The notes beneath the pieces were generated by a model, which was given only the letters and a program-made list of their open reading frames with translations, did no database searches and was not told the origin of the DNA. Below, in pieces: positions 16,548 through 53,735 of a stretch of DNA of 64,000 nt. Source of the DNA: Macrostomum lignano (taxonomy: Eukaryota); NCBI GenBank assembly GCA_002269645.1, contig NIVC01003360.1:38431-102430 (forward strand), written 5' to 3'. The number at the start of each line of letters is the position of its first letter. Position 1 is the first letter of the stretch. The position numbers and the translations under genes are program-made.

Positions 16548-16871
16548 ATGCAACTACTGAAAAAAGAGAAAAACAGAACTGTGCTTGATATAATCAGAGC
16601 CATGGTTGAGTTTGATCAAGGCAACGATACTACCGACCGTTTTTTACCACAACCGGGTCCAACAACAGCAACTGTGACTGATATTAGGCGAGATTCGAAT
16701 CCTCAATATGTTCGAACGTATTCAGTAGCTGATATTGCGATTGTTGCAGCTATTTTTATTGTTGTAGTTCTGTCGTTAGCTGTCGTATTCGTCCTGCGAC
16801 GACGCCAAAACTGCGGCTCAGGCTCAGTCTGCATCTGTACACAGCGAGAAGATTCCGATGTGCAACTTTAG
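16548..16871 (+). CDS. Possible last exon of a small single-pass membrane protein
   Basis: ORF has a T/P-rich stretch, a 23-aa hydrophobic helix (IAIVAAIFIVVVLSLAVVFVL) and a basic stop-transfer RRR; possible acceptor tgtacag near 16521. No family recognised. Confidence 0.35.
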   Translation: MQLLKKEKNRTVLDIIRAMVEFDQGNDTTDRFLPQPGPTTATVTDIRRDSNPQYVRTYSVADIAIVAAIFIVVVLSLAVVFVLRRRQNCGSGSVCICTQREDSDVQL

Positions 16872-32400: not shown

Positions 32401-35400
32401 CTGGGAATGGGGATTCGGTTGGGGATCTGGGAACGGGGATTCGGTTGGGGATCTGGGAATGGGGATTCGGTTGGGGATCTGGCAATGGGGATTCGGTTGG
32501 GGATCTGGCAATGGGGATTTCTATGAAGATCTGGGGAACTACTGGCGAGGATCTAGAGGATCAAGAATATGAGATTCTAATGCGGATCTTTACAGATAGA
32601 AATAGAATAGAGATATAAAAACACAAAAATGCTTACCTCGTCCAGTTTTCCTTCAACAGTGGTCAGTAGCATAGCCAATTCAGACGGATTAGCCCCGACA
32701 GTTAAATGCGCTTTCACCAGAGCCAGCAGGCGAGAAAGCGCCTCCCGATCGGCCATCAGATGCCGCCTTGTCGATGAAACTTCGCTAGCCAGTGTGGCAC
32801 TACAGCTGGCCAACTCTGTCAGCAGCTCAGCGCGACGGTTTTCCACCTCCCTGTGGGGCAGTGGGCGGAATCCATCTGTTTGTATTTACCTGTCAGTCAG
32901 TCTGTATCTACCTGTCAGTCAGTCTGTATCTACCTGTCGGTCAGTCTGTATCTACCTGTCAGTCAGTCTGTATCTACCTGTCAGTCAGTCTGTATCTACC
33001 TGCCAGTCAGTCTGTATCTACCTGTCAGTCAGTCTGTATCTAACTGCCAGTCAGTCTGTATCTACCTGTTAGTCTGTATCTACCTGCCAGTCTGTATCTA
33101 CCTGTCAGTCTGTATCTACCTGTCAGTCACTGTATCTACCTGTAAGTCAGCCTGTATCTACCTGTAAGTCTGTATCAACCTGTCAGTCTGTATCAACCTG
33201 TCAGTCGGTCTGTATCAACCTGTCAGTCTGTATCTACCTGTCAGTCGGTCCGTATCAACCTGTCAGTCTGTATCTACCTGTCAGTCGGTCTGTATCTACC
33301 TGTCAGTCAGTCTTTATCTACCTGTTAGTCTGTATCTACCTGCCAGTCTGTATCTACCTGTCAGTCTGTATTTACCTGTCAGTCACTGTATCTACCTGTA
33401 AGTCAGCCTGCATCTACCTGTCAACTCTGTATCTACCTGTCAGTCAGTCTGTATCTACCTGTAAGTCTGTATCAACCTGTAAGTCTGTATCAACCTGTCA
33501 GTCTGTATCAACCTGTCAGTCTGTATCTGCCTGTCAGTCAGTCTGTATCTACCTGTCAGTCGGTCTGTATCAACCTGTCAGTCTGTATCAACCTGTCAGT
33601 CGGTCTGTATCAACCTGTCAGTCTGTATCTACCTGTCAGTCGGTCTGTATCAACCTGTCAGTCTGTATCTGCCTGTCAGTCAGTCTGTATCTACCTGTCA
33701 GTCGGTCTGTATCAACCTGTCAGTCTGTATCAACCTGTCAGTCTGTATCTGCCTGTCAGTCAGTCTGTATCTACCTGTCAGTCGGTCTGTATCAACCTGT
33801 CAGTCTGTATCAACCTGTCAGTCGGTCTGTATCAACCTGTCAGTCTGTATCAACCTGTCGGTCTGTATCAACCTGTCAGTCTGTATCTGCCTGTCAGTCA
33901 GTCTGTATCTACCTGTCAGTCGGTCTGTATCAACCTGTCAGTCTGTATCAACCTGTCAGTCGGTCTGTATCAACCTGTCAGTCTGTATCAACATGTCGGT
34001 CTGTATCAACCTGTCAGTCTGTATCAACCTGTCAGTCGGTCTGTATCAACCTGTCAGTCGGTCTGTATCAACCTGTCAGTCTGTATCTGCCTGTCAGTCA
34101 GTCTGTATCTACCTGTCAGTCGGTCTGTATCAACCTGTCAGTCTGTATCTACCTGTCAGTCGGTCTGTATCAACCTGTCAGTCTGTATCTGCCTGTCAGT
34201 CAGTCTGTATCAACCTGTCAGTCTGTATCAACCTGTCAGTCGGTCTGTATCAACCTGTCAGTCTGTATCAACCTGTCAGTCAGTCTGTATCTACCTGTCA
34301 GTCGGTCTGTATCAACCTGTCAGTCTGTATCAACCTGTCAGTCAGTCTGCATCTACCTGTCAGTCGGTCTGTATCAACCTGTCAGTCGGTCTGTATCAAC
34401 CTGTCAGTCTGTATCAACCTGTCAGTCAGTCTGCATCTACCTGTCAGTCAGTCTGTATCAACCTGTCAGTCTGTATCTACCTGTCAGTCGGTCTGTATCT
34501 ACCTGTCAGTCTGTATCTACCTGTCAGTCAGTCTGTATCTACCTGTCAGTCGGTCTGTATCTACCTGTCAGTCAGTCTGATCTATCTGCCTTTCTTCCAG
34601 TCTTCAGCGCATTCAGAAGATATTGTGAGAAAAGCCAAATTACGCAAAGTATTTTGAATACAGTTATATTAAAATTTGGCCCACCTCAGGTAGTCCAATC
34701 GACAGCGTTCAATAGAAGCAGCAGCCTGGGTCGTGGCGGCTGTCAGCGAAGCCTCCAACTGTGGCAGCAGACGGTCTCGATAATCCATGAGCAGACGGTG
34801 CCGATTGGCTGCAGCGAGACCAGCGGCGGCCAGACGACCAGCTTCAACATCGTCAATTGGCTTTGACGCCTCGCTAACAACAGGCGACAAATGGGCAGCC
34901 TGGTTAGCATAGCCTGTTAGATAACGCTTGGCCGCAAAATTTTCCAATAGACTTGACACTGGCGCGTGGCTGCCACCAGAAGAGACCGAGCAGCGACGGC
35001 AGCGGACTGCGGACACCGAGCCACTACTGTCTGCGCCTAGCTGAGCCGCTTTGCCCTGCTGCAGGCAGCTGTTTCGGGTTTGATTTATTCTTTTTTATAA
35101 TAATTTCGGTTGGAACTTGTCAATTAATTCAAAATAAACTCTTTGCCTACTGTTAGTAGCTTAACTTGCTCATTTCCCGTTGGTAAGAAATAAATTTAAA
35201 GAAGATCTTAGAAACTAACGCGTGTCGTGCAAAGCATACAATAAATAGGGATTCTGATAAGAATATAGAAATTAGGGATTTCGATGGGCATCTGGGGAAT
35301 GGGGATTTCAATGGGGATCTGAAGGGTGGGGTTTTCAATGGGGATCTGGGGGATGGGGATTTTGATAGATCTGGGAATGGAAATTTTGATGGGGATCTGA

Positions 35401-35862
35401 GGGATGGGGATTTTGATGGGGATCTGGGGGATGGGGATTTTGATCGGGATCTGGGAATGGGGATTCTGATGGGGATCTGGGGAATGGGGATTCTGATGGG
35501 GATCTGGGGAATGGGATTTTGATAGGGATCTGAAAAAACGGATTTTCATCTAAAATCTGAGTTGGAAGCCGGAACACAACAAACAATAAGAATCCTTACC
35601 CAGTGCAGTAGTGATGGCCACATGGCATAACTAGAGTGGGTCGGACCTGTCCACACTGGCCGCAAGTGACAGTCCAACGAATGCGCCTGCCAGGACCACA
35701 GTCGGGATCTAGAAGGTCAGGCTCATCTACGCATGACAATGATGGACTGGTTGCCAATAAAGCAGATGGCGGGGACTCATAGGATTGCTCAGGCTTTGTT
35801 GGGGTGCTAGCCTCAGACAGGTAAGGTGCAAAGCCACACACCAAATTGCGACTATTGATATC
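26421..35862 (-). CDS. RING + coiled-coil + NHL-repeat E3-ligase-like protein (TRIM-NHL-like, no B-box seen); exons 35862-35600, 35068-34685, 32850-32637, 30204-29831, 29463-29274, 28087-27719, 26768-26421; 713 aa, initiator ATG missing
   Basis: All six GT-AG junctions keep the frame (2142 nt). C3HC4 RING split across exons 1-2 (CGQC...PCGHHYCTG|C...CRRC); helical exons 2-3; NHL repeats LAVSPSGDILVAD, VAVHRATGNIVICD, PRALCFDKDGRVLVLD, PTGVAVDAVYRLYVSD, PCGVAVRHTDG. Confidence 0.87.
26900..27690. repeat. 27-bp minisatellite (TACAGATATCAAGCTGGAGCCAAACTG)n in intron 6 of the RING-NHL gene
   Basis: About 29 copies read directly. Confidence 0.95.
28128..29215. repeat. 28/31-bp minisatellite (GCAGAGGGAGATTTTGAAGGGATTGTAT)n in intron 5
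   Basis: About 37 copies; the 31-bp variant carries GGCAGTTT. Confidence 0.95.
29535..29775. repeat. Decayed GGGATCTGGGGAATG-type repeat in intron 4
   Basis: Several degenerate units resembling the arrays at 30340-32530 and 35270-35530. Confidence 0.7.
30340..32530. repeat. 25/26-bp G-rich minisatellite (GGGAATGGGGATTCGGTTGGGGATCT)n in intron 3, roughly 85 copies
   Basis: Read directly; dense GGG/GGGG runs. Confidence 0.97.
32875..34585. repeat. 18/22-bp minisatellite (CTGTCAGT[CAGT]CTGTATC[T/A]AC)n in intron 2
   Basis: Read directly; mixed unit lengths. Confidence 0.95.
35270..35535. repeat. About 27-bp degenerate G-rich repeat (GGGATCTGGGGAATGGGGATTCTGATG)n in intron 1
   Basis: About 9 copies read directly. 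Confidence 0.85.
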
Positions 35863-37635
35863 CTGAAACCAATGTTTGATCACAAATAGATTACCAAATT
35901 TCAAATTTTATTAGGCCCAAAAACTAATAACACAGTAATGCGTATAGTATCTAGTTTATACAAAAACATCAGTCAATACAATATAAATCAAATAAATGCA
36001 ACACAATTAAGAAAATAAACTATAAATCTAAGCATATTGACAATGATTAGGAGGTATGTAAGCTGGTCCTAGGTCCAAATTTGGAATGCCAAAAAATGGC
36101 TAATCTGTTATGACACATATCAGGGATGTTGCAAATTTTATACAAAATTTAACCTAGTTGCTTTATTACCTTACCTAAATTCATAATACTAAATTACAAT
36201 CTAATAATATATTCTAGCAGCTTTTGCAATAACCTTTTTACCATAACAAAGAAGCTAGTATATGTCATATTCTGATAAAACACATTGATTATTTAAGCAT
36301 TTATGGTTGTATTAGCATTTTTCTTTGATTATATTAAAAATTAAAAATTATCAACTAGCTACTTCTGGCTGATTCAAGGTTTTTTAACTAATCTTTATAT
36401 TCTTGCATTTATTTGTAAGAAATTAAAATAATAAGTAAAGCCTAATAATACTAAAGTTATTGCTAGTCTAGGATATAATCTATAATCTATGATAAACTTC
36501 ACAAGAATAAAAAAAGCATTTTTGTCTTTATATGGGCATGTTTCTATGGCAATGATTTTTCCACCTACTAAAACATGTCCCATTTGCTTCCAAATAAAAC
36601 TACAGTTTAAAAACATTTTTATATAAACTATGATGCAAAATTGTTATTTAAGGACCAAAAAACTAGTATGAACAATTGTTTCATATCACAATTTAGCAAT
36701 ATATTCTAAAACATATGATTATCACATTCTTGGAATTGCCAAAAATAATATATATTTTTAATATAGTTATATTATATAGCTTTATTTAGCACTTTTAAAA
36801 CTTAATTTAACATTTGTAAAATTTGATATCATTGGCATTTCTAGCCCTATTGAAAACAATGACATTTTCATAGATAGCTATCTAATACACTTTAAAGAAA
36901 TGTTGGTGCAGCATCAAGTGTACTATACCTTGTAGTAAAGCATATCATATTAAGGCTAAGGGACAGCATGCCAGAGGGGCTGAGGCAACATATTAAAGGG
37001 ATAGCACACTAGAGAGGAAGCATATGCATATGCTTAAAGGATAGCATGCAAAAGTGATAGAACATTAAGGCATATTGAAGGATAATGCACTAGATATATA
37101 TTATAATAGAAATGAAATATGACAACAAAATGAGTATATATTTGCTTAGAAAAAATACCATAATTATAAAATATTTAGGGGGGGGGGCTTACTTATTGGT
37201 ATACCTAGGATTTTGGGGGGGGAGAAAGTATGCACTGGTCATTTTCTCATTTAGACTCATTAGGGGCCTAACAGACTAGAACTTAGAAGAGGGAGTAATA
37301 TGGTTTATGGTTATATACTGATACACAAGAGTGTGGCTAGGGGGATGCTTGGCATACAAAGTGTCTTACTTGGTATACTAGATGCACAAAAGTATATGAT
37401 GCTTAGTGCATATCCATGGACTTTTAAAAATTTATTTTAATATAGATTTCTATTTTGTTTGTCTTGACTTAGTGATAGTAATATAATTGGTATACATTGT
37501 AGAGGACTTATAGTTGGTTTCATTCTTGGAGTTATGCTGGAGGAAAACTTATTAAATTTCATCATTTATGCTAGACTTAGACCAAGTTTATGCACTGCAT
37601 GGCATGCCAGCTAGACTAGAGGCGGGGTGTGCATG

Positions 37636-40600
37636 ACTAACTACTGAATTCACCGGCTGTTGGGTTCACCGGATTTTTAACTTTATTTTTAAGGGTTGGA
37701 AATATATATAATCGATAGCGCAAGTAAAACTAGAGATGCGCCTAGATTTTTGGCTCTGCGCGTTGCCCCTGGACATCAGGAGGGCGATTTTTGTTATTTT
37801 TTGGGGGGTGAAACCGGCGGTGAACCCAATAAATCCTTCCAGAGAGCTGAAAACCTATCATGCAATATTTCAAAGCAAAATATAGGCAGATTTCGACGTG
37901 CGCATAAAATTTCAGCGTTGCGCGTTGCTCCTGAACTGCAGGAGAACGGTTTTTGTTAAATTCCGGTGGTGAATGACTGCCGCTGAACTCCGCGGTGAAG
38001 GAAATTAAGTGCGTTTCCCGAGTCGAAAAATAGTAAATTTTACTTCTACAAAAGCTATCAAAGTAAAATTTTATCACTTTTATCAGCATTTTTGCATTCC
38101 CTTTTGTGTTGATTCTTAAGCTATTTATTTTAATGCAAAGCGAAAAAAGTTTTAAAAAAATTCGAACTACGAGTATTGAGTACTGCGTGCACGCGCAGGC
38201 GGCGGCAGATGGCTAGCACGTTGCAGGGCACTTGCTCACATCAAAGACAAAGCCAAAGTGTTGTGGTATTTTTGTGCACATACTTTTTAAAGCCTGTATT
38301 AATATAATATATTAAAGTAAAAACTTCTATTTCGATACATCTATTTGGTCAAATTATATAGACATACAATATTTAAGATTCTATAGTTTCCATTAAATTT
38401 TATAATTGAATTAAGGGAGGCACCTATAGGCTATAGTATATTTACTTTTATGCAAAATAGCAATTACCATGTAATGATATTGACCCTACACTGGCCATGT
38501 CAATATAATTACTTATAATTACCAATACTAGTCAATAAATATTTTTATATTTGATTTTATTGTAAATATATTTCTATAATAATAATCCATCCATATATAA
38601 TAAATTTTACTCTTAAAATTCTTTTTCTTCTTTCTAACTGTAATTGCTAATTGAAAATTAGAATATACCAAGAATTAGTATGGCTCAGTTTTGTAAATTA
38701 AAAAAAATTCTGTGCTTTCTAATATTGTGCATTCTTTATCATAACACAAAATAATTTAAAATTGAAATTGCTAAATAGATAAGTAACATTTTGAAATTTG
38801 TATATATTAAAATTAGAGACTAATTTCAGGGGCATAGCTAGGAATTTCCTATGGGAGGATACACCAAGGTGAAAGTGCTATGACAGAGTCACATGGTAGC
38901 ATGTATAGCAACAAAGGGCAACAAAAAAGTTTTTGTCAGGCTCTTTAGGGGGTATATGGTATAGGACCAAGACCACCATACTTGGGGGAGCTAAGGGGGA
39001 GGAATTTGGCTTGCCATGTTATTAGATGGTACTGAGAAGGGGTAAGATGGGGAGAGCTAGCAGGACAAGGCCGCAAGAGAAGAACTGGTGAGCAGGCCAG
39101 GTGGGTGAGTGAGCCAGGCTCCTCATTTTTTTCATTCAATTTGAATTGTAAAGTAACAATGAGATATTGTTAAAATTGCCCTGGTTGACTTGCAATCATT
39201 TTGGGCCACTTATTTGTCTTATTAGTGACTAATCTTGGGATGTTTCCTCCTTATCTAACTCCACAACCCATCACAACCAATAGCAATGCTGGAAGATTGG
39301 TAGCTCCCCCTCAATTCCAGTAGGCCTAGCCAGTGAGAACTTATTTTGCATTATAATATAGGAATGGCATAACTTATAAACTAGAATTACCAATGCAACA
39401 AAGGATCACTAAGACTAGACAAGTTGGTATGGCAATAGTGTCACATTGAAGACTTATTGGTTGCCAATCTTGAATGCTCATTAGGAATTATATTTGTACC
39501 CAGAAACACAATAGACACAATAAATTGTGTTTTTTGTGTTTCATCAGTCTAGCCTGCTATTGAGCTATCTAGAAGCTGCACACTGATAGAATGCAATTTT
39601 TCTCAGGGATATTACTTCTTTCTAAGTTACAGGGACCAATATGCTCATTAGGAATTATATTTGTACCCAGAAACATAATACACACAATAAATTGTGTTTT
39701 TTGTGTTTACATCAGTCTAGCCTGCTATTGAGCTATATAGAAGCTGCACACTGATAGAATGCAATTTTTCTCAGGGATATTACTTCTTTCTAAGTTACAG
39801 GGACCAATATGCTCAATAGGAATTATATTTGTACCCAGAAACACAATACACACAATAAATTGCGTTTTTTGTGTTTACATCAGTCTAGCCTGCTATTGAG
39901 CTATCTAGAAGCTGCACACTGATAGAATGCAATTTTTCTCAGGGATATTACTTCTTTCTAAGTTACAGGGACCAATATGCTCATTAGGAATTATATTTGT
40001 ACCCAGAAACACAATACACACAATAAATTGTGTTTTTTGTGTTTACATCAGTCTAGCCTGCTATTGAGCTATCTAGAAGCTGCACACTGATAGAATGCAA
40101 TTTTTCTCAGGGATATTACTTCTTTCTAAGTTACAGGGACCAATATGCTCATTAGGAATTATATTTGTACCCAGAAACACAATACACACAATAAATTGTG
40201 TTTTTTGTGTTTACATCAGTCTAGCCTGCTATTGAGCTATCTAGAAGCTGCACACTGATAGAATGCAATTTTTCTCAGGGATATTACTTCTTTCTAAGTT
40301 ACAGGGACCAATATGCTCATTAGGAATTATATTTGTACCCAGAAACACAATACACACAATAAATTGTGTTTTTTGTGTTTACATCAGTCTAGCCTGCTAT
40401 TGAGCTATCTAGAAGCTGCACACTGATAGAATGCAATTTTTCTCAGGGATATTACTTCTTTCTAAGTTACAGGGACCAATATGCTCATTAGGAATTATAT
40501 TTGTACCCAGAAACACAATACACACAATAAATTGCGTTTTTTGTGTTTACATCAGTCTAGCCTGCTATTGAGCTATCTAGAAGCTGCACACTGATAGAAT

Positions 40601-40713
40601 GCAATTTTTCTCAGGGATATTACTTCTTTCTAAGTTACAGGGACCAATATGCTCATTAGGAATTATATTTGTACCCAGAAACACAATACACACAATAAAT
40701 TGTGTTTTTTGTG
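37636..40713 (+). repeat. Left terminal inverted repeat (about 3078 bp)
   Basis: Reverse complement of 46196-49272; the ORF track gives mirror-image ORFs (38945-39139/47769-47963 identical; 37742-38089/48819-49166 differ by one residue). Confidence 0.95.
39474..40713 (+). repeat. 168-bp tandem repeat x about 7.4 at the inner end of the left TIR
   Basis: Unit starts ATGCTCATTAGGAATT at 39474, 39641, 39809, 39977, 40145, 40313, 40481, 40649; mirrored at about 46196-47433. Confidence 0.95.
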
Positions 40714-40837
40714 CTTTTTAAAGTGATTGGAAACTATTGAAAACTACTTAATTGCAGAATTCAAAACTAGGAAACATTGTCTATAGGTATATTTGTAATG
40801 ATATGGCCTCATTTCAATTAAAAGCACCGATTAACCT

Positions 40838-42271
40838 TTGAATATTATTTTTACATCGCTTTGCAATGCAATTTTCTTGCCTTTCAGCCATCTGCTAGTG
40901 ACCGCGATCAGCATGTGCGCTAGTTGCGAAACTGCTACCAGCATTGATTGCGGCTCTGGTCGCGGCACTGATCGCCAAGCTGGTCGCGGCTCTGGTCGCG
41001 GCACTGATCGCCAAGCTGGTCGCGGCACTGATCGCCAAGCTGGTCGCGGCACTGATCATCGAGCTGGTCGCGGCACTGATCACCAAGCTGGTCGCGGCAC
41101 TGATCGCCAAGCTGGTCGCGGCGCTGGTAGCGGCGCTGGTCGCAGCGCAAACATTAGCATTAAACGTTGCTCCAAAACCGACGCTGATCGTGTCGACACT
41201 GCTAGAAATTCAAGTACCTCTAAGAGTGGGTCAGTTTTGACTCCAACCCGAAATGCATTTAATGATGATTCTATCCAGGCATCTAGCAGCTCCGTGGAAA
41301 ATAAGCGTCGGTCAAATTGCACAGCTCCAAAGTATTTTCCAGTCGGTAAATATTTTAGAAGTAGTCGACCTGATGAAGAGCTTATTCGGAAACACCTACC
41401 AGGTGTACTGCTGGTAAACACGATTGTTGTGAAAGGTTACAGGGATTGGCCAGGACGTAATGAGCCCATTGATGTTTATCTAAATGGTATGTGTGCTGTA
41501 AATCACGTCGTAATGGCAGTTGTTTTATTTCTGCGTCAGAATAATGCCGTAAGGGAGATGTTTAGGCTTCGATTCGGTGGCATTAGAATCGGCACATGCA
41601 TTCTCCGATTGGTCGATGCTGCATCATTGCCAGAAGCTGAGACTGTTTTGCTCGATGCCATTTTAGGCTCTAACTACAGACTGCAATTTTTAAACAAGTG
41701 TGTCTTCATGGACTCGCATTCTGTACATGTTGACCACTCTCAAGGTGATGAACGTGAAGTAATCGAGCTAATGCTCTCGCCTATTCTCCAAAGCACTTTG
41801 CGAATGGCAGAGTGCTCCAACGGACACCGACACGAATTCGACTCGTTCAGATACGCGAAAGAATCACTGACGTTTCAAACAGAAGTCGAAAAGCGCACAA
41901 TTGCAGACGTTATAGAGGCAGAATTTGTAAGACCGGAAGTTAAATTGTGCCCCTCCATCACTGAGCAGGGCACAGCGTGTCAAGAAGTTATGACAGTCGC
42001 TCCAAGACGGCCTTTTCCGTTGATTCTAATTTGGCCAGCGGTGGTTGGCACCGTAGATCACCTTCAACCTGAAGTCCATGCCGGCGAAGTGCAATTCGTT
42101 CTGGCGGGAATAACGTATTATGCAAACGACCACTATCAACTACGACTACCGTTCAAGCATCACAACCAAGAAGTAGTCTACGACGACCGCATCAATGACA
42201 AAAATTGCCTTGGTCGAATTCCTGCAGGCGCAATTCCACATAGCGCTGTTTATTTTTCTAGCGCCACGTAA
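40838..42271 (+). CDS. Transposon-borne USP-like (papain-fold) cysteine protease; likely ATG at 40913 (452 aa)
   Basis: Uninterrupted ORF with a Cys-box-like NGMCAVN (Cys 41492-41494), finger-like CSNGH and CP...C, and a His-box-like FVLAGITYYANDHY (His 42131-42133) followed by VVYDD. N-terminal 24-bp GRGTDRQA repeats; acceptor-like ctttcag at 40887. Confidence 0.68.
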   Translation: MNIIFTSLCNAIFLPFSHLLVTAISMCASCETATSIDCGSGRGTDRQAGRGSGRGTDRQAGRGTDRQAGRGTDHRAGRGTDHQAGRGTDRQAGRGAGSGAGRSANISIKRCSKTDADRVDTARNSSTSKSGSVLTPTRNAFNDDSIQASSSSVENKRRSNCTAPKYFPVGKYFRSSRPDEELIRKHLPGVLLVNTIVVKGYRDWPGRNEPIDVYLNGMCAVNHVVMAVVLFLRQNNAVREMFRLRFGGIRIGTCILRLVDAASLPEAETVLLDAILGSNYRLQFLNKCVFMDSHSVHVDHSQGDEREVIELMLSPILQSTLRMAECSNGHRHEFDSFRYAKESLTFQTEVEKRTIADVIEAEFVRPEVKLCPSITEQGTACQEVMTVAPRRPFPLILIWPAVVGTVDHLQPEVHAGEVQFVLAGITYYANDHYQLRLPFKHHNQEVVYDDRINDKNCLGRIPAGAIPHSAVYFSSAT

Positions 42272-43578
42272 AACTTTAGCTTGTACTCGTATTAGCGCTA
42301 TTTTGATACTTAGTCCGGTTTACACATTCTTGGACATAACCTTGATTTGGACACGGAGTTTAAAAAAATCAGGAGCAGTTTTAATCGATTTACAAGTCTA
42401 GTAAAAAAAGTACCGTTTCTTAGTTGTCAAGTTATGTTATGCTCTCAGATTATTTTAATATGCTCGAGGAGTCGTCAATTGACAATTAGTGCGTATTATT
42501 ATTGTTAGTCTTGATCTTATCCTTTTATTTCCTTTAGCTCTCACAGTGGGCTTTAAACCCAAGCGTGTCTTGCGGCTTCATTTAATTATCTACCATATAT
42601 TATAGTCAAGTCATATCACACATGCAGTGCGCTGTGCTCTTTTTTACCTTTGGACTAATTGCTCATGTTGGATCGTGTTTTGAAAACTTTCTTGACGCGT
42701 TGTCTTGCCTAACACACAGAAGTACATGTACATACGTACGAGCACTACCTACCTACCGTAATACAATTCCCATAGCTACATGCAAAAGTCTTAGTGTTAG
42801 GCAAGTACGAGCCTTTTGAATTTGTTTTGCAACCCGCAGTTTGTTTGCGTTGCTAACTGCCTTTCTACCATATATCCTATCAGACGCCAAATTAGTCAAT
42901 CTTTTTTCTCGCCGTTATCCTTTGCAAGTAGTTCGTTTTTTCTTTTCTTTTAATTTTGAGACCTTTGTACTGTTCAGAAGCTTGAGTTTTACAGATGTAC
43001 GTGTAAATTGAAAGGGTAATTATCACCACGTTTTTTAGTATATAAGACAGACAAATCTTAGACATTTAGTATAGTTTGATATTTTCAACTTTTGTATATT
43101 AGAAGATTGTGACTAGCCATCCGAGCCCTAAATAAAACAAATTGAAAAAAAATGAATGAGTACCTTTAGGTTTTGCATCCACTATGAAAGGCAGCTATTT
43201 AGCTAGCAGAATATATCAATCAGATCCCTATGATCCCTATTTTGGCTCAAACGTCTGAGAAACCTAAATTAGCCACAGAAGTTAGTAACTCCCTCTAGGA
43301 TGGTTACAACAATTTTTTATATATCCAGATATACGTCGTACTCTTATATTCAGTTGCCAATATCGAGGGCTCAGACTTTGTTTTTTTAAAATATACGTAA
43401 AATACGAGCGTATCTTCGACAATTTTTAATGTTCGTTTTAATTACATGCCTAAAATTTCTTGTCTCCATTTTCTTTTCTTAGGACAAAGCCCTCAACAAA
43501 AGCAAAAATCACTTTGGCTTGAAGGCTTTATTTGGCCGTCTTTTTGATCTTGTAGAGAGCCAGAGATTCTATCTAGAT

Positions 43579-43608
43579 GCCCCCCATCGGGGGGCGAAAA
43601 TTGCTAGT
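43579..43608 (+). mobile_element. Helitron-type 3' terminus inside the foldback element
   Basis: Perfect hairpin GCCCCCC-ATC-GGGGGGC, 8-nt spacer, then CTAG|T; 5' end not identified. Confidence 0.55.
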
Positions 43609-44595
43609 TTCTCTTCTAAATAAATAATGTCAAATTAGCCAGCGACCCAGAGGTCTGTTTTCGCATTCTCTCAACAAGAGAAAATCAATTGGGTCGTAAC
43701 AATTCAATTACATGAGTTATCATAGCTCATTGATTTTGATTTATGAGTTGTTATTATACTGTTTTATCAGTCTTCTCTCGCGGCAATACGAGCGTTGTTC
43801 TGCCAGTTGAATCGGCACACTCAGTTCCAGAACCGTTTTTATGCATTTAATACTGTAGAATTCAGTAATAAAAAGTAGATTATTAATAGCCGCTTTGCAA
43901 AATGTTAAAACATAACAAAATTGGAGAGCAACCCACCATGAAAATACGGCTCGTAATAATTGTGTTCATACATGTACATATTTATTACATTTGTCTACGT
44001 ATACATTATCAACGGCAAAAAACTATCAGATTGAAAAAAGTAACGCTTATCCATTACACAAAAATACAGATAAAACAGCCAGCCAGGGATAAAACAAACA
44101 GCAGATTAAATATACAGATACGGATAGATGAGTAATAGATCAGGATGACAAAATTTATCGCACATATAACTTTGTTTATAATTAAGCCAGAAACACATGT
44201 AGCGCAACACTGCTACATGTATTGCTGGCATGAGAGAGCCATTTTTCGTGTATAGATGATAGCTACTAGGCCTCACGAGTGGGTCACGGCTGCATAAAAT
44301 CCGTAAAAATACTTCAACTTACTGATTTTCAATTTGCACTGTAAACTTTTCGGAACAAAATCCATCTAAGCTTAAGATTCTTTGGTGCATAAAGAATCAA
44401 ATATTAAAAGGTCCTGCTAATATTTCTGGTCCGGTTCTGGTCCTGCTGCTAATATTTCTGGTCCGGTGATTACAAGCAGACGAGAAAGCAATGAGATATA
44501 AATTAGTCTTTAATAATGGAATTTAAATAAAGAAAATTATAAAGCAAAAATCAACTTGCACAACTTGTAAACTCAAGCATTCGACTTCAGTTCAG

Positions 44596-45930
44596 TTAAA
44601 AAGAAGCGTTAGCTAGTCCGAAAATCATTTTTTTCTCTATTAATTTACATTCAGTTCTGCGAAGTTTCGTATTATTGGAACTTCTCAGAACTATGGCACT
44701 TTTTTCACGGAATTTATTCGAATTTTCTCCTCGTCGTCTTTTCATCGGAGCTATTTCAATATCAGTCTCGGCCTCCCTTCGAGCAGTCTCCTCGGCCTGC
44801 CTTCGAGCCGTCTCCTCGGCCTGCCTTTGAGCCGTCTCCTCGGCCTGCCTTCGAGCCGTCTCCTCGGCCTGCCTTCGAGCCGTCTCCTCAGCCTGCCTTC
44901 GAGCCGTCTCCTCGGCCTGCCTTCGAGCCGTCTCCTCGGCCTCTTTTCGAGCCGTCTCCTCGGCCTGCCTTCGAGCCGTCTCCTCGGCCTGCCTTTGAGC
45001 CGTCTCCTCGGCCTGCCTTCGAGCCGTCTCCTCAGCCTGCCTTCGAGCCGTCTCCTCGGCCTGCCTTCGAGCCGTCTCTTCGGCCTCTTTTCGAGCCGTC
45101 TCCTTGGCCTTCCTTCGAGCCGTCTCCTCGGCCTGCCTTCGAGCCGTCTCCTCGGCCTGCCTTCGAGCCGTCTCCTCGGCCTGCCTTCGAGCCGTCTCCT
45201 CGGCCTGCCTTCGAGCCGTCTCCTCGGCCTGCCTTCGAGCCGTCTCCTCGGCCTCTTTTCGAGCCGTCTCCTCGGCCTGCCTTCGAGCCGTCTCCTCGGC
45301 CTGCCTTCGAACCGTCTCCTCAGCTTCCATTCTACTTGACTCCTCTTCGATTGAAGCATCAGAAAAAACTTCATCATCCACGATATCCAGATCATTTTCA
45401 GATCGACACATTCGTTCTAACTCGCTCTTAAGGTGGCGTAGAGAAGGAAGCAATATTTCTATTGATAGCCGCCACTTGGCTGATGCCAACGAAGCTGCAC
45501 TCTCTACATGCTCTAATGCAAAACTTAAGTGCTTGGCTGCCGTTACGTTGCTCCGATAATTAAATTGCTTAGAACGCTGCCAATTGTGGCCTTCAAGCCA
45601 GGCGCGGCCAGCTTCAGCAGCACTTGAACGTTTTGAAGAATCCAGCCGCAACTCGGCGCGTTTTCTTTTACGAAAAATTGCAATGCCATTAACATAAGCT
45701 AAAGATATACCACCTTCAGATATGTACTTCACGTTCGAACCTCGCGCAGTTCGAATCGCAGATTTAAGCTTTAAATCAAGAAGGTTTGCCGCATCACGAA
45801 CATCCAGAGCTTTTACTTTGATACCGACCACAACATCAGTGTCCGGATAGTCATCAGGCAATGAACCTTGAGCTTCAAAAACCACGAAAGGATCGTTGAT
45901 AAACGCCAGAAAAGACAAAGTTAGGGCCAT
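44596..45930 (-). CDS. Transposon-borne protein of unknown function, 444 aa, with about 23 RRQAEETA repeats (predicted single alpha-helix rod)
   Basis: About 200 unique aa N-terminal and about 55 unique aa C-terminal are in frame with the 24-bp repeat; basic NLS-like RKRKR and KRRR; acceptor-like ttaccag about 20 nt upstream of the ATG. Confidence 0.68.
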   Translation of the reverse strand: MALTLSFLAFINDPFVVFEAQGSLPDDYPDTDVVVGIKVKALDVRDAANLLDLKLKSAIRTARGSNVKYISEGGISLAYVNGIAIFRKRKRAELRLDSSKRSSAAEAGRAWLEGHNWQRSKQFNYRSNVTAAKHLSFALEHVESAASLASAKWRLSIEILLPSLRHLKSELERMCRSENDLDIVDDEVFSDASIEEESSRMEAEETVRRQAEETARRQAEETARKEAEETARRQAEETARRQAEETARRQAEETARRQAEETARRQAEETARRKAKETARKEAEETARRQAEETARRQAEETARRQAEETAQRQAEETARRQAEETARKEAEETARRQAEETARRQAEETARRQAEETARRQAEETAQRQAEETARRQAEETARREAETDIEIAPMKRRRGENSNKFREKSAIVLRSSNNTKLRRTECKLIEKKMIFGLANASF

Positions 45931-46195
45931 TCAAGTAAGGCCATAATCTGGTAAATTAAATATAACATTTTTCCTAGTTTCTCATGGTGTAATTGAGCAA
46001 GTTACATTGTAGAACAAAAAGAACAATCTAATATGTGCACCGTGTTTTGTTACTTTGCAGCTAATTTTATAAGAGTTCATTGGCCTGATTAAAATGAGGC
46101 CTTACTAATAGGCACACTGCATATAAAACTTCCTTCCTCGTCTTCATTTCTGTAATTAAGCATGTTACAATCTAGAAGACACAGTTTTTTGTAAA

Positions 46196-49100
46196 CACAA
46201 AAACACAATTTATTGTGTGTATTGTGTTTCTGGGTACAAATATAATTCCTAATGAGCATATTGGTCCCTGTAACTTAGAAAGAAGTAATATCCCTGAGAA
46301 AAATTGCATTCTATCAGTGTGCAGCTTCTAGATAGCTCAATAGCAGGCTAGACTGATGTAAACACAAAAAACACAATTTATTGTGTGTATTGTGTTTCTG
46401 GGTACAAATATAATTCCTAATGAGCATATTGGTCCCTGTAACTTAGAAAGAAGTAATATCCCTGAGAAAAATTGCATTCTATCAGTGTGCAGCTTCTAGA
46501 TAGCTCAATAGCAGGCTAGACTGATGTAAACACAAAAAACACAATTTATTGTGTGTATTGTGTTTCTGGGTACAAATATAATTCCTAATGAGCATATTGG
46601 TCCCTGTAACTTAGAAAGAAGTAATATCCCTGAGAAAAATTGCATTCTATCAGTGTGCAGCTTCTAGATAGCTCAATAGCAGGCTAGACTGATGTAAACA
46701 CAAAAAACACAATTTATTGTGTGTATTGTGTTTCTGGGTACAAATATAATTCCTAATGAGCATATTGGTCCCTGTAACTTAGAAAGAAGTAATATCCCTG
46801 AGAAAAATTGCATTCTATCAGTGTGCAGCTTCTAGATAGCTCAATAGCAGGCTAGACTGATGTAAACACAAAAAACACAATTTATTGTGTGTATTGTGTT
46901 TCTGGGTACAAATATAATTCCTAATGAGCATATTGGTCCCTGTAACTTAGAAAGAAGTAATATCCCTGAGAAAAATTGCATTCTATCAGTGTGCAGCTTC
47001 TAGATAGCTCAATAGCAGGCTAGACTGATGTAAACACAAAAAACGCAATTTATTGTGTGTATTGTGTTTCTGGGTACAAATATAATTCCTATTGAGCATA
47101 TTGGTCCCTGTAACTTAGAAAGAAGTAATATCCCTGAGAAAAATTGCATTCTATCAGTGTGCAGCTTCTATATAGCTCAATAGCAGGCTAGACTGATGTA
47201 AACACAAAAAACACAATTTATTGTGTGTATTATGTTTCTGGGTACAAATATAATTCCTAATGAGCATATTGGTCCCTGTAACTTAGAAAGAAGTAATATC
47301 CCTGAGAAAAATTGCATTCTATCAGTGTGCAGCTTCTAGATAGCTCAATAGCAGGCTAGACTGATGAAACACAAAAAACACAATTTATTGTGTCTATTGT
47401 GTTTCTGGGTACAAATATAATTCCTAATGAGCATTCAAGATTGGCAACCAATAAGTCTTCAATGTGACACTATTGCCATACCAACTTGTCTAGTCTTAGT
47501 GATCCTTTGTTGCATTGGTAATTCTAGTTTATAAGTTATGCCATTCCTATATTATAATGCAAAATAAGTTCTCACTGGCTAGGCCTACTGGAATTGAGGG
47601 GGAGCTACCAATCTTCCAGCATTGCTATTGGTTGTGATGGGTTGTGGAGTTAGATAAGGAGGAAACATCCCAAGATTAGTCACTAATAAGACAAATAAGT
47701 GGCCCAAAATGATTGCAAGTCAACCAGGGCAATTTTAACAATATCTCATTGTTACTTTACAATTCAAATTGAATGAAAAAAATGAGGAGCCTGGCTCACT
47801 CACCCACCTGGCCTGCTCACCAGTTCTTCTCTTGCGGCCTTGTCCTGCTAGCTCTCCCCATCTTACCCCTTCTCAGTACCATCTAATAACATGGCAAGCC
47901 AAATTCCTCCCCCTTAGCTCCCCCAAGTATGGTGGTCTTGGTCCTATACCATATACCCCCTAAAGAGCCTGACAAAAACTTTTTTGTTGCCCTTTGTTGC
48001 TATACATGCTACCATGTGACTCTGTCATAGCACTTTCACCTTGGTGTATCCTCCCATAGGAAATTCCTAGCTATGCCCCTGAAATTAGTCTCTAATTTTA
48101 ATATATACAAATTTCAAAATGTTACTTATCTATTTAGCAATTTCAATTTTAAATTATTTTGTGTTATGATAAAGAATGCACAATATTAGAAAGCACAGAA
48201 TTTTTTTTAATTTACAAAACTGAGCCATACTAATTCTTGGTATATTCTAATTTTCAATTAGCAATTACAGTTAGAAAGAAGAAAAAGAATTTTAAGAGTA
48301 AAATTTATTATATATGGATGGATTATTATTATAGAAATATATTTACAATAAAATCAAATATAAAAATATTTATTGACTAGTATTGGTAATTATAAGTAAT
48401 TATATTGACATGGCCAGTGTAGGGTCAATATCATTACATGGTAATTGCTATTTTGCATAAAAGTAAATATACTATAGCCTATAGGTGCCTCCCTTAATTC
48501 AATTATAAAATTTAATGGAAACTATAGAATCTTAAATATTGTATGTCTATATAATTTGACCAAATAGATGTATCGAAATAGAAGTTTTTACTTTAATATA
48601 TTATATTAATACAGGCTTTAAAAAGTATGTGCACAAAAATACCACAACACTTTGGCTTTGTCTTTGATGTGAGCAAGTGCCCTGCAACGTGCTAGCCATC
48701 TGCCGCCGCCTGCGCGTGCACGCAGTACTCAATACTCGTAGTTCGAATTTTTTTAAAACTTTTTTCGCTTTGCATTAAAATAAATAGCTTAAGAATCAAC
48801 ACAAAAGGGAATGCAAAAATGCTGATAAAAGTGATAAAATTTTACTTTGATAGCTTTTGTAGAAGTAAAATTTACTATTTTTCGACTCGGGAAACGCACT
48901 TAATTTCCTTCACCGCGGAGTTCAGCGGCAGTCATTCACCACCGGAATTTAACAAAAACCGTTCTCCTGCAGTTCAGGAGCAACGCGCAACGCTGAAATT
49001 TTATGCGCACGTCAAAATCTGCCTATATTTTGCTTTGAAATATTGCATGATAGGTTTTCAGCTCTCTGGAAGGATTTATTGGGTTCACCGCCGGTTTCAC

Positions 49101-49272
49101 CCCCCAAAAAATAACAAAAATCGCCCTCCTGATGTCCAGGGGCAACGCGCAGAGCCAAAAATCTAGGCGCATCTCTAGTTTTACTTGCGCTATCGATTAT
49201 ATATATTTCCAACCCTTAAAAATAAAGTTAAAAATCCGGTGAACCCAACAGCCGGTGAATTCAGTAGTTAGT
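46196..49272 (-). repeat. Right terminal inverted repeat (about 3077 bp), including the mirrored 168-bp array
   Basis: Reverse complement of 37636-40713. Confidence 0.95.
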
Positions 49273-50333
49273 GTGTGCATGGGACAGTTTGTACGAATAT
49301 TTTTCATTTCATAAAACTTAAAAGCTCGTGTCGTTTCCATTTGTGTATTATAATCAAAACTTTATAAAGATGTAAGCATTAAAGAGATAATTAACTAAAC
49401 GTTTTTTGAGTTATAAAACAATTTCTAGATTTTAGAGTTAGACTTTGTTTAACTTTTTTACGAATGAATATTAAAATTCTCCATTTTATTACAAATACAA
49501 AGTAAGCCAACATATAAAGTTTCTTGCTTGGCAAGTAAGATGAATAGGAAGGCAAAAATCAACATTAAATAAATTTAATTGAACGACGCGTTTCGCAGGA
49601 TACTGTATATCTTCAGGTGAATAGCTGAAGGCAAAAAAGCACGAATACCGCGGTCAATATACTTCACCAGTGAGCTGGCCGTACGTCGCTTCACTGCTTG
49701 CTCTGAAACATTAGGCGATATAACAATCTGTGTTTTAGTATACTCGTATCTAGCTATACATAAAACATCAAAGCATTCTATCACATCCACAGTAGCGCAC
49801 AAAAGAAAGTAAAAAGGGTTTAGCCTAATATCGATACTTAGTGCTAAAATTCTGCACAAACGAGACGGGAGTTGAGATCGATTAAGGAATTTTTTACCCT
49901 GGTTCATTTTATCTTCGACATGTGAGAGCAATTTTAGCTCCAATACGGCAGGGTGAATTTAGGGGAAGCGGCCACCAAAATTCAGATTAATTTTGTGCCC
50001 TTTGACAAAATTAATAGGCGCCCCTATATCTGAGCGGCAGGGCGCCTCTGGCACTGAGGTAGGTTACCCATGTCTCTGAGGTAGACGCCGCTAAACCTAA
50101 ATATGTTGGCGTTCTAAGCCCTAAGAGGAAAAAGACAAATACATTTACATTACATTACATTATTTGTCGTTAAAACTCGACGTACCGCCCTTTTTTATTG
50201 GCAAAAGAGGCAACACGTACGCCAGATCCAAAAAACTCCTGCTGGATCCGCCACTATATAAAGGCGATTAATGATTGGTTTTTCCCCGATACATACTGTT
50301 CCAGAAGCTCAGGCGTACAATTTTACTCACTTG

Positions 50334-52881
50334 TCAGCTGTGCTCAGCCCTATAACTCCGAAATCCATGGGCCCGACTCGACACATGCCTGCAGGTCGGG
50401 CACAACCAGTGCCTTGCCGCTGTAGTCGTAAAGATCCCGAGGCACTTGAAGCAAAGAATTATTTCCGTGGCCTTTATGTCCGACCTCGCCCACATGGGCG
50501 TCCTCAGAAATATTGACATGGCCGGCTACTTGCTCGTCGTCTTGAGCATCGCGATCGTCATGGATGCCTTCTATGCCGTCATATCTATCCCCACCTAGGG
50601 CGTCGCTAAGACCATCGCATTGGACATCACAAATGCCGCCTCTTCTGCCGCTTCTGCTACTACGGCCACGTCGTCTGTAACCACGGTTTCTCCCACAACA
50701 GTCGCCCTCTCGTTTTTCGTCACGCGTACCAATTCTCGTGCAGCCTCTTTGTTCGTTTTCTGATACGTTCTGATGACCAGCTCTTCTCCATGTCTTCGGA
50801 AGTACTTGGCCACAGGAAAGTACTAATTCGGAGCGGTACTGTGGCTCGCTTTTTTGTTTACAACGAGAGCTTCAGAAGCTTCAGCTTCAGCGATCGGCCA
50901 TGCATCACATCTCTTCTGACAATTCTATGATACACTTCCACAGATCCTTCGCTGTTGCGGAATTCTTGCACTGTGCTCTGTCCAGTAAAGAATCGTTGGC
51001 AGTCAATCATGAAGCCACTAAAGAGCGGAAAGCACAAATTGACGACCTTCTGCGCCAATTTTTCGTTAAGGTACGCATTGATCATCGGCAGCTGCGATTC
51101 ACTTGCTTGGCGGCAAGCTGCATTGATTCGCTCGAAGATCTGCTGTGCCTGACTAAAAAAGCGGGACGATGAGCGAATCGTTGCCCGACTCATAATGTTT
51201 TCCGGAGCGTTCATTTTCACGCCTTGCATGGGCTCGTTGTCACCCACATCAGACGTCTCCATCAACAGTGTTTCGACACGCGGCATGGCTCTTCTTGCAT
51301 TGCGCTCGACTGGCTCGAGCAGAACATGCAGCATGTTTTGAAGATTGGCTAGGCCTTCCGCTGAAGTGGTGCTTGCAACAATCCGCGCAAACGCCTGAAG
51401 GTACAGTGATTTTACCTGAGGACTTGCGCTGCGCACTTCTTGCCAATTCCAAATCTCATTGATGATGTGACTTCTACCAAGAACAATAGCGGTGCGCTGA
51501 CGTGCCTGCTGCAAAGTTGCTTGCATAAACTTTGGAATTCCACTCTGTCCATTTTCTGATTGCAGCGCGATCAGAAAGCAGCAATCAAGATATTCGCGAA
51601 TTCCTAATCCATTGAAGACCTGTATGAGGGCATGTGGTGTCAGCCAGTTAAGATCCGTCGTAATCTTTGCTATTTTCACAGTGCCGTGGCCCATTTTTTG
51701 TTCCTTTATCTTCTGAATCCACTTTGCTAACATGCTTGTCAATTGCACGGTATCGTGATTACAAGTCAGAACGTCGAATAGAGAAACTTGGGTCATTCCA
51801 ATAGTTTGCTCGGCTGCCATCACTAAGGCGTAATGGTATACTGGCTTCTGTGGCATTCCACCTGGCCAGCTGCAAACTGACGCTCCTGTCGAGACGATAA
51901 CTAGGTTGATTGGCATTTTTAACTGTTTCATGAGAGACAGAGCCTCTGCAGCCATCTCCGGGTGATATGCTCCAATAGCCGTAAGCGAAATATCGCCCGC
52001 AAACTCAAAGTAATGCACGTACGCCTTTAGTTTCGGCGAATTGCTGACGCTCAACAGCAAGTTATGCAGGGATGTCTGGGCACAGTTTCTTTTTCTCTTT
52101 GTTGTACTGTCGAATTCCTTGAAGCATCCTTTGCGATGGAATGTTGCGCAGATCGTCATTTGTTGCAGCAACTGAAGCCTGCAGTACGGCAGCTCCCTCA
52201 GTATCAGTTCTTGTTTTTAAGCCTGCATCCCGAACATTTCTAGGTTTAGGGGGGTGCTGCAATGGCTTATGGGTCTGCTCCAGACGCACTTCGCAGCCCT
52301 TCACCTCTAGCTTCCATCGCCCAGCTGACACGAAGACGGTTTTGGGTCGCCAGCCAGTCGCGCCGAGCATTTCAATGAGTACTTAGCAGACTAAGGGCCA
52401 TCAAAAGAACTGCAAACAATTGAGAGGCTGCAGTGCTTCACCCAGCAGTTCTGCACTTCACGCAACAAAACGCCGTTAAATTGCTCTTTCGCTGTGCTCG
52501 CCGAGTTACTTCTTTCATGGTCTTATTAACTTCGTACCATTTCTCTTTGAGACACCCAAATGTCCCGACAAAACGTTGAACTTCAGCCTCAGAAGGCGAC
52601 GAAGGCGTGCTTTCGGGTTCTACGCTCTGGTCTTCCGAAGATGACAAAATAGACAATGCAGCAGTAAGCAGCTGCCTTCTGTTTTGCTGCAAATCACATC
52701 GGATCGTCTTTATCGAGGCCTCATCGTATTTGCCGGGATGCTGCACACTCAATTGCTCAACAATACTCTGATAGGCTTCCGAATTCTTGATGCCAGCTCC
52801 ATCTGTCAAATCTGCTGCATCGATGGACTCCTTCAGTTGTTGAATTACTTAAAGTACGTCTTTATCCCGCTGCGACGCCTG
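50334..52881 (-). pseudogene. Degenerate NOF-like/MULE DDE transposase
   Basis: ORF 50858-52171 has the expected motif order: VI(V)STGASV (D1 codon reads GTC, 51893-51895), VYHYALV, LTCNHD...ML.KW, ITTDLNW (D2), FNG...YL.CC, GRSH (CxxH with C>G), RNSEGSVEVYHR (E). Upstream fragments are broken by stops or frameshifts; acceptor ttccag near 52881; downstream CFKC...WLCPTC remnant. Family assignment is from recalled motifs. Confidence 0.72.
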
Positions 52882-53034
52882 GAATGAAAAACAAAAGGTA
52901 AGAGAGGTGCGATTAAGTAGGAAAAGGGGTAACAAATGCAATTACCGGTATTACTATCTATATTTTATTATATAAAACAATACATCTGCGTCCCTGAAAA
53001 GGTTACTTGATACGACATGAGCAACAACAACAAC

Positions 53035-53330
53035 TAAAATACGCAGTCCTTCAATAAGGAGTGCGAGGATCTGCGTCACTGTACCGCGCTGCGGCCGGAA
53101 TCCATTCTGCTTATAACGCAAGTAGGGGTCTAGCACTGAATGCAGACGTTCGAAAGTTTCGCAGTATAGGACATCAGTAACATGCCTCGATGAGCTTTTT
53201 TTCTGTATCGTCTCGGCTTTCTTCAAAATTGCTACGGTCCACTCGGTGGGTGCGGAGACGCCGGCAAGCACGCGATTCATGACGCCAGGGACTCAAGAAG
53301 CCACACAGCGAAGCCGCAGTGCCTTGAATT
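53035..53330 (-). pseudogene. Non-LTR retrotransposon reverse-transcriptase fragment (RTE-like)
   Basis: NRVLAG...PTEW..AI.KK...LDPYLRYKQNGFRPQRGTVTQILAL.IEG matches the N-terminal part of a LINE RT (P.EW...Q.GFR..RST.DQI). Confidence 0.75.
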
Positions 53331-53336
53331 ATAGTT

Positions 53337-53735
53337 GGGCATGGCTGGGCATATTGGGGCATGGCTGGGCATGCCTGGGCATAGTGGGGCATGGCTGGGC
53401 ATAGTTAGGCATGGCTGGGCATAGTTAGGCATGGCTGGGCATAGTTAGGCATGGCTGGGCATAGTTAGGCATGGCTGGGCATAGTTAGGCATGGCTGGGC
53501 ATAGTTAGGCATGGCTGGGCATAGTTAGGCATGGCTGGGCATAGTTAGGCATGGCTGGGCATAGTTAGGCATGGCTGGGCATAGTTAGGCATGGCTGGGC
53601 ATAGTTAGGCATGGCTGGGCATAGTTAGGCATGGCTGGGCATAGTTAGGCATGGCTGGGCATAGTTAGGCATGGCTGGGCATAGTTAGGCATGGCTGGGC
53701 ATAGTTAGGCATGGCTGGGCATAGTTAGGCATGGC
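53337..53735. repeat. 20-bp minisatellite (GCATGGCTGGGCATAGTTAG)n, about 17 exact copies plus decayed ones
   Basis: Read directly. Confidence 0.97.

Follow-up and report, generated by a model that had tools for sequence, protein, structure and literature searches.

Mutator-like elements (MULEs) make target-site duplications (TSDs) of 8-11 bp, long arms are diagnostic of them, and MULE groups are known from flatworms other than the one considered here (PMC6446971). FB4 is a non-autonomous foldback element with TSDs of 9-10 bp and repetitive arms of ~700 bp; it is frequently rearranged, can carry the gene Ssk, and was assigned to the MULEs by the same indirect reasoning that we apply below (PMC8277862). 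Tm1 of root-knot nematodes combines foldback-like composite arms and 9-bp TSDs with a Phantom-type transposase (PMC3169594). Galileo, a member of the P superfamily in Drosophila, has long, internally repetitive, foldback-like arms whose repeats have been proposed to hold multiple transposase-binding sites (PMC3573991, PMC3688188), and Merlin elements have TSDs of 8-9 bp, arms of 24-462 bp and a conserved terminal 5'-GG (PMC8101967). Here we analyse an 11,637-bp foldback element of Macrostomum lignano that lies at positions 37636-49272 of a 64-kb stretch of DNA ("the window"), which is the last 64 kb of the 102-kb contig NIVC01003360.1 (assembly GCA_002269645.1, Mlig_3_7), with 100% identity between contig and window over 30913-52271 of the latter. 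The Mlig_3_7 assembly was built from PacBio reads with Canu and polished with Pilon, and its gene models derive from a genome-guided transcriptome (PMC5730564).

We found a second copy of this element at an unrelated locus of the same assembly, and on balance we think it probable that the element belongs to the foldback type of class II (cut-and-paste) transposons and is young, non-autonomous and present in few copies. It is a new, exceptionally long-armed member of an already-known kind of foldback or gene-carrying transposon, and represents neither a new kind of element nor a new accessory-gene module.

Structure of the element

The element in the window is a discrete unit with inverted arms of 3.08 kb. 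The arms match each other without a gap over 3,074 nt (37636-40709 and 46199-49272), and the match found by BLAST extends over 3,082 nt at 99.87% identity, with 4 mismatches (37636-40717 and 46193-49272). A perfect 9-bp TSD, GTGTGCATG, abuts the termini ACTAACTACTG... and ...CAGTAGTTAGT (Table 1); by simple arithmetic, the probability of a 9/9 match arising by chance at one fixed junction is ~4e-6. Outside the TSD the two flanks in the window are unrelated to each other, also when compared in inverted orientation. Each arm consists of an outer part of 1.8 kb that is unique and an inner part of 1.24 kb made up of 7.4 copies of a 168-bp unit, every one of which holds a short hairpin-forming palindrome. 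The motif TTCACCGG occurs twice in the first 37 bp of the arm and five times in the whole window, compared with 1.03 expected, and the 21-mer of the terminus was found at the two termini only. An earlier note on this DNA had claimed 3.08-kb terminal inverted repeats (TIRs), a perfect 9-bp TSD and a giant foldback unit, and our results, including the second copy that ends at the same termini, confirm this description.

Between the arms lie two convergent open reading frames (ORFs) separated by a non-coding spacer, in which the longest open frame has 81 codons, just as expected from shuffled sequence. Upstream of both ORFs we detected an inverted homology of ~85 nt that is weak but significant, its alignment score of 33 comparing with a mean of 19.2 (sd 2.4, maximum 29) in shuffled sequence. 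This relic suggests that the inverted repeat is old and that ongoing homogenisation now reaches no further in than its outer 3 kb. When the arm was scanned for an inverted copy of its own terminus, no internal one was found. A composite of two ordinary TIR elements placed head-to-head was therefore rejected, since the arm is not itself bounded by terminal inverted repeats. An exact scan of metagenome and prokaryote-genome collections with the terminal 37-mer gave no matches, as expected, and Rfam and tRNA scans of the window also gave none.

Table 1. Features of the element in the window (window coordinates).
Feature	Position	Strand	Basis or remark
Left TSD copy, GTGTGCATG	37627..37635	.	Read directly; same as 49273-49281
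Left arm, terminal inverted repeat, 3.08 kb, terminus ACTAACTACTGAATTCACCGG	37636..40717	+	99.87% to right arm
Subterminal pair of 71-nt direct repeats at a distance of 162 bp, 73% identity (family D4)	37737..37969	+	
168-bp tandem array, 7.4 copies, inner left arm	39474..40716	+	Tandem-repeat analysis
Degenerate inverted-repeat relic inside left arm, upstream of ORF1	40736..40818	+	Local alignment with 46088-46171
ORF1, hypothetical protein BOX15_Mlig016243g2	40913..42271	+	First ATG is the annotated CDS start; frame open from 40838
AT-rich non-coding spacer between the ORFs, 2.3 kb	42272..44595	.	Closed in all frames, ~48 stops per frame
ORF2, 444 amino acids, unannotated	44596..45930	-	ATG at 45930, 260 bp inside right arm
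Degenerate inverted-repeat relic inside right arm, upstream of ORF2	46088..46171	-	Same alignment as the left relic
Right arm, terminal inverted repeat	46190..49272	-	Its 168-bp array, 7.4 copies, at 46190-47434
Right TSD copy, GTGTGCATG	49273..49281	.	Same as left copy

A second copy at an unrelated locus

The second copy (locus L003) was found through the 90%-identity cluster of the ORF1 protein, the other member of which is BOX15_Mlig006706g1. It occupies 7105-19111 of the 424-kb contig NIVC01000867.1 and aligns with the whole window element at 94.6-98.2% identity across the aligned blocks. On both sides the similarity breaks off precisely at the ACTAACTACTGAATTCACCGG termini, and 7-10 kb of flank show no shared sequence. 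Because the similarity ends exactly at both termini we regard the element as a discrete mobile unit, and since the flanks share nothing, the two loci are not homeologous copies of one region. The presence of a second copy with the same termini at an unrelated locus means that the element has moved, and in combination with the perfect TSD of the window copy it is most simply read as transposition.

No TSD is present at L003. The left flank ends in ...TTGTTAAGAT and the right flank begins with ATCTTAACAA..., and these are reverse complements of each other. The flanking segments 6564-7104 and 19112-19651 are in fact near-identical inverted repeats of 541 bp, differing only in a homopolymer, and where this inverted repeat stops, in unique DNA, there is no duplication either. 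We considered whether the second copy had inserted into the centre of an older palindrome, which would need a palindromic 9-mer as TSD; the 9-mers in question, TGTTAAGAT and ATCTTAACA, are not identical and this was rejected. A mis-join in the assembly was likewise rejected, since the inverted repeat would then run on and not end after 541 bp inside a 424-kb contig.

Neither ORF is intact in the second copy. For ORF2, the counterpart of window 45411-46190 is absent, so that the first 173 codons and the upstream region are gone; extra 168-bp units stand in place of the lost part, and a remnant of 93 amino acids is left. In ORF1, the 158 bp that contain the start codons (window 40759-40916) have no counterpart, and a 7-bp insertion near the 3' end causes a frameshift. 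Repeat numbers differ as well: the 24-bp minisatellite in ORF1 has 8.5 copies in the window and 37.5 at L003, that in ORF2 has 23 and 2.6 respectively, and the 168-bp arrays have 7.4 and 7.4 copies in the window arms but 4.4 and 16.9 in those of the second copy. Over 1,122 nt, ORF1 shows 6 substitutions between the copies, 4 of them non-synonymous and 2 synonymous.

Two further observations were made at this locus. The second copy contains ~190 bp (12943-13129 of its contig) that are lacking from the window copy at 43508 and have no obvious terminal inverted repeats. Outside the second copy, at a distance of 3.9 kb, a 247-amino-acid ORF (1937-2680, minus strand) matches the TNP-like RNase H N-terminal domain (PF21787, E = 8.6e-10) and is a truncated fragment of a P-element/THAP9-like transposase; we saw no structural link between the two. 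P-type elements make duplications of 7-8 bp, and nothing ties this P-like fragment to the element.

Concerted evolution of the arms

Comparison of the four arms over their unique part (1.78 kb) showed 1 difference between the two window arms and none between those of the second copy, while any window arm differs from any arm of the second copy by 21-22 substitutions and 14 gap columns. All 35 columns that differ between the copies are common to both arms of a copy. Since the arms are alike within a copy and the copies differ at 35 columns, the arms must evolve in concert. Insertion of a cut-and-paste element does not renew its arms; some process thus maintains their identity, and frequent gene conversion would be the ordinary explanation: within each copy, conversion between closely spaced inverted repeats of the same element would homogenise the arms. 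None of the differences among the four arms falls in the outermost 157 bp, as one would expect if the ends act in cis.

Comparable behaviour is seen in large palindromes that undergo gene conversion between arms, such as the ampliconic palindromes of the human Y chromosome and the inverted repeats of plastids. There too, kilobase-scale arms around a short spacer stay near-identical while the unit diverges from its paralogue. Unlike the present element, such palindromes are immobile and have no TSD.

Coding content

ORF1 contains a 24-bp minisatellite at 40941-41143. ORF2 begins with an orphan N-terminal region of 200 amino acids, which is followed by 23 copies of the 8-amino-acid unit AEETARRQ, encoded by a 24-bp minisatellite at 44767-45321. 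Even without their repeats, both ORFs exceed the longest open frame seen in any of 500 dinucleotide shuffles, and in both ORFs the GC content at first codon positions (GC1) exceeds that at second and third positions (GC2 and GC3). Judged by length and composition, ORF1 and ORF2 look like coding or recently coding sequence.

Neither ORF could be linked to a known protein family. ORF1 had no Pfam match, nor any match to Pfam and NCBIfam at E<=1 or to PDB sequences (phmmer) at E<=10. The sole Pfam match of ORF2 was a sub-threshold one to Cornifin, located on the repeat, with no transposase domain, and its N-terminus matched no PDB sequence at E<=10. Six-frame translation of the central spacer and of the arm, with stops masked, gave no Pfam match. 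The element as a whole thus has no known protein domain, and for this reason we regard it as non-autonomous.

An initial protein search with ORF1 scored 8,000 candidates and yielded 1 match, being swamped by the low-complexity repeat. We therefore removed the repeat and ran an exhaustive phmmer search of 1.84 billion cluster representatives, which returned only the ORF1 cluster itself with its two copies, a fragment of 72 amino acids, and a bacterial repeat protein (adhesin) matched by chance. The fragment comes from the 1.5-kb Logan contig SRR24204725_615686 (locus L002), of which positions 2-519 are a relative of ORF1 residues 237-413 at ~50% amino acid identity. This relative is decayed, being frameshifted and containing stops, and the contig has no DNA similarity to the arms. 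For the N-terminal 200 residues of ORF2 no relative was found among 5.8 billion proteins. Exact-sequence look-ups for an arm ORF of 115 amino acids, ORF1 (477 amino acids) and ORF2 (444 amino acids) found none on record, and a literature search for the locus tags of the gene models gave no hits. A query in which arm ORFs, ORFs of the flanks and the tail of ORF2 were joined gave no matches, not even to the neighbouring annotated gene, and carries no weight. The two ORFs could also have been paralogues of each other, but BLASTP aligned only their low-complexity repeats (E ~0.02) and we rejected this.

Structure prediction by AlphaFold2, run without an alignment for ORF1, gave that protein a mean predicted local distance difference test score (pLDDT) of 31; the model is unusable and justifies no fold comparison. 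For ORF2, residues 203-385 were predicted as one helix with pLDDT 80-93 and the remainder scored <50. The helical segment coincides exactly with the minisatellite, so the rod is a recent expansion in the window copy.

These results bear on several claims of the earlier note. Its two intact ORFs, converging from ~0.2-0.3 kb inside the TIRs, are present in the window copy, where they start 196 and 260 bp inside the arms, and the lack of a transposase that it claimed is borne out by the Pfam searches of the ORFs and of the six-frame translations of spacer and arm. ORF1 had been described as a protease. We found no catalytic domain of a cysteine protease (USP/ULP-like) by sequence or by fold, the family, PDB and AlphaFold2 analyses all failing to support one. 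The "helical rod" proposed for ORF2 agrees with the long predicted helix, but this helix is a 24-bp minisatellite with 23 copies in the window and 2.6 in the second copy. Finally, the suggestion that the element kept only accessory genes is not supported by that copy: since both ORFs are broken there, they are not retained accessory genes.

Surroundings of the element

The window is rich in other tandem repeats. Dense, long minisatellite arrays with units of 16-28 bp fill 2756-35532 and 53357-53735 (for example 7158-8960, 30326-32519 and 32881-34588). Besides the minisatellite of ORF2, the window has at least 15 arrays with such units, and several whose unit is divisible by 3 hold frames open; one artificial-looking array ORF, at 9848-10897, has many coiled-coil Pfam matches. 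In-frame 24-bp minisatellites are probably common throughout the M. lignano genome.

The nearest annotated gene is at 30913-35844 (minus strand) and has a 707-amino-acid product with a faint NHL match; two large minisatellite arrays fall within the gene. As 1.8 kb separate its 5' end from the left end of the element, the element has inserted upstream of the gene start. On the other side, 1.6 kb to the right of the element, a frame of 437 amino acids at 50858-52171 (minus strand) has no Pfam domain and corresponds to no annotated gene, and the short ORFs in 52438-53280 have no domain. Farther away, an ORF of 197 amino acids at 13518-14111 (minus strand) shows a weak match, below threshold, to the PUB-like domain of SPATA2 (PF21388, E = 1e-5).

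Relation to known transposons

FB elements and gene-carrying Pack-TIRs such as Ssk-FB4 are closer precedents for the element than MuDR. FB and FB4, FB-NOF and the Ssk-FB4 Pack-TIR share with it a non-autonomous nature, arms with tandem sub-repeats that vary in number, and a TSD of 9-10 bp. FB4 also resembles it in being prone to rearrangement, in carrying a passenger (which FB4 amplifies) and in having a transposase source that is inferred. The differences lie in the arms, which here are 3.1 kb long with a non-repetitive outer part of 1.8 kb and a 168-bp unit, compared with ~700 bp in FB4, and in the absence of any sequence similarity; in addition, two copies are known here and the passengers have no identified parental host gene. 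In the searches described above, the relative of ORF1 outside both copies was the decayed ~50% fragment, and ORF2 had none.

Like the present element, Tm1 has composite arms of variable length and a 9-bp TSD; most of its members are non-autonomous and some carry an unrelated gene (Cg-1). It differs in having autonomous members with a Phantom-type MULE transposase, none of which was found here, and in its arms of 14-bp repeats, which have a mean arm-arm identity of 93% against 99.9-100% here. The window copy resembles maize MuDR in its 9-bp TSD, its long arms and its two convergent ORFs beginning near the arms. MuDR arms are ~0.2 kb long, however, and mudrA is a transposase whereas neither ORF of the present element is; the arrangement is moreover lost in the second copy. 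The MuDR-style convergent cargo that had been proposed for this locus thus holds for the geometry of the window copy, with the ~85-nt relic upstream of both ORFs, and fails for want of a transposase and because of that loss. Galileo encodes a THAP/P transposase and has TSDs of 7 bp, unlike our element with its 9-bp TSD and lack of a transposase. We also considered the Merlin superfamily, whose TSD length fits, and rejected it since the termini begin with 5'-AC (ACTAAC...) and the arms are 3 kb long.

When the features that define MULEs are compared, the window copy has a TSD of the right length (absent at L003) and long TIRs, but no MULE-type DDE transposase of its own. As in foldback elements, of which long composite arms with tandem sub-repeats together with 9-bp TSDs are characteristic, the arms contain tandem sub-repeats whose copy number varies between arms and between copies. 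The earlier assignment to an FB-NOF/MuDR-like family therefore stands as regards the foldback arms and the 9-bp TSD, from which, as TSD length and arm structure, its membership of the MULEs is argued. Among the cut-and-paste superfamilies of eukaryotes, a 9-bp TSD suggests MULEs. A MULE-type origin is our best guess, with about an even chance of being right, and is not demonstrated, because the defining transposase is absent from the element.

Origin and mobilisation

The following course of events would account for most of the observations. The element inserted at the window site by means of a staggered cut, leaving the 9-bp duplication, and would be mobilised by a transposase supplied in trans, which may bind the conserved outer ~150 bp with its two TTCACCGG motifs and subterminal repeats. 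With a 9-bp TSD and long composite arms, a Mutator-like enzyme (Phantom- or FB-like) would be the most likely source of this transposase. ORF1 and ORF2 would be lineage-specific passengers that have been inflated and reshaped by in-frame 24-bp minisatellites, and not conserved parts of the element. For L003, we favour repair of a break off the other arm over a birth of the element by inverted duplication: a break at one terminus, perhaps a one-ended cut by the transposase, would have been repaired with the other arm as template, repair synthesis would have overshot into the opposite flank, and the end would then have been joined.

Several points weigh against this explanation. Two copies have been seen, one of them with a TSD, and L003 was reached through the ORF1 protein cluster; its lack of a TSD and its 541-bp inverted flanks are not predicted by simple cut-and-paste. 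The superfamily is unproven, with no transposase partner identified, and the arms are about six times as long as the longest in a survey of MULEs, where they ranged from 14 to 500 bp (PMC6446971). The arms might in principle owe their identity to read correction or to polishing with Pilon, although differences of 1-2% between the loci survived the same pipeline. Lastly, ORF1 has diverged between the copies by 0.53% compared with 1.72% in adjacent non-coding sequence (Fisher p = 0.004) and has transcript-based gene models at both loci (PMC5730564). On account of this lower divergence and of these models some function of ORF1 is possible; the signal of constraint is mildly suggestive, with too few sites to decide.

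Among other explanations, we regard as unlikely an origin as a macro-transposon formed by inverted duplication. Here a host segment at L003, with a single end ACTAACTACTG... and the 541-bp flank, would have been duplicated in inverted orientation around ORF1-ORF2, which would create two inward-facing ends, and the window copy would be the transposed product. Such an origin would suit the structure of L003, where an inverted repeat runs 541 bp past both termini into unique DNA and no TSD is found, as well as the clean TSD of the window copy, arms far longer than a transposase needs and the lack of a second end within them. Yet the second copy is the more decayed one, with both ORFs broken, the counterpart of window 40759-40916 lacking and the 168-bp arrays unequal, and the same structure results from an ordinary insertion followed by a later break at a terminus that was repaired off the other arm with overshoot; two copies cannot tell which state of L003 came first. 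It is far less probable that the element is autonomous and of an unfamiliar kind, with ORF1, ORF2 or both acting as a new transposition protein. Both are intact in the window, just inside the arms and of coding-like composition, ORF1 is supported by transcripts and less diverged than its surroundings, and having no homologues the two offer no homology by which a function might be ruled out. Against this, neither carries the signature of a catalytic domain, the expansion of minisatellites accounts for large parts of both, neither is intact in the sole other copy, 4 of the 6 substitutions in ORF1 are non-synonymous, and its one other relative is a frameshifted fragment with stops.

Nor do we give much credence to a history without transposition, in which repair synthesis or segmental duplication placed a copy of the segment in a double-strand break and the repair left the 9-bp repeat as a by-product. 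That just two copies are known, and that L003 shows a rearrangement at the element which is not transpositional, would agree with it, but similarity ends at the same base at both ends in two unrelated loci, and a perfect 9-bp duplication outside perfect inverted termini is the signature of staggered-cut integration and not of capture mediated by microhomology. An assembly foldback artefact, arising from chimeric PacBio reads or in Canu, is the least credible of these explanations. The arms are near-identical, and the genome is known to be difficult for assembly, its polishing having used short reads that map to multiple places (PMC5730564); nevertheless, a unique, asymmetric centre of 5.5 kb separates the arms, the TSD is perfect, the element is interior to a 102-kb contig that continues for 14.7 kb beyond it, and the second copy, which is 2% diverged and shares this architecture, emerged independently in the assembly, in the interior of a 424-kb contig.

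Within the preferred explanation of a transposon mobilised in trans, the identity of the arms may have a source other than gene conversion. One arm could be re-templated from the other by DNA synthesis primed from the foldback, either during transposition or in the repair of cleavage at one end. We consider this distinctly improbable, but if true it would explain the identity of the arms within a copy, their kilobase length and the 541-bp overshoot without a TSD at L003. In the same vein, the family may owe its origin to an inverted duplication that provided a lone transposon end with a partner and so turned host DNA into a mobile unit.

Implications

The points of real interest are the homogenisation of the arms and the palindromic flank of the second copy. 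Together, the two copies illustrate in compact form the concerted evolution of kilobase-long transposon arms in nature, and also how breakage of a foldback may lead to a larger palindrome that takes in flanking DNA, a route from a transposon to chromosomal rearrangement. At least two gene models for a "hypothetical protein" sit within copies of the element. The findings are evidence that a DNA transposon family was active very recently in M. lignano, which implies that a working transposase exists somewhere in its genome. As M. lignano is a model for regeneration and transgenesis with a repeat-rich, recently duplicated genome, such a transposase would bear on genome stability and annotation, and could possibly serve as a tool.

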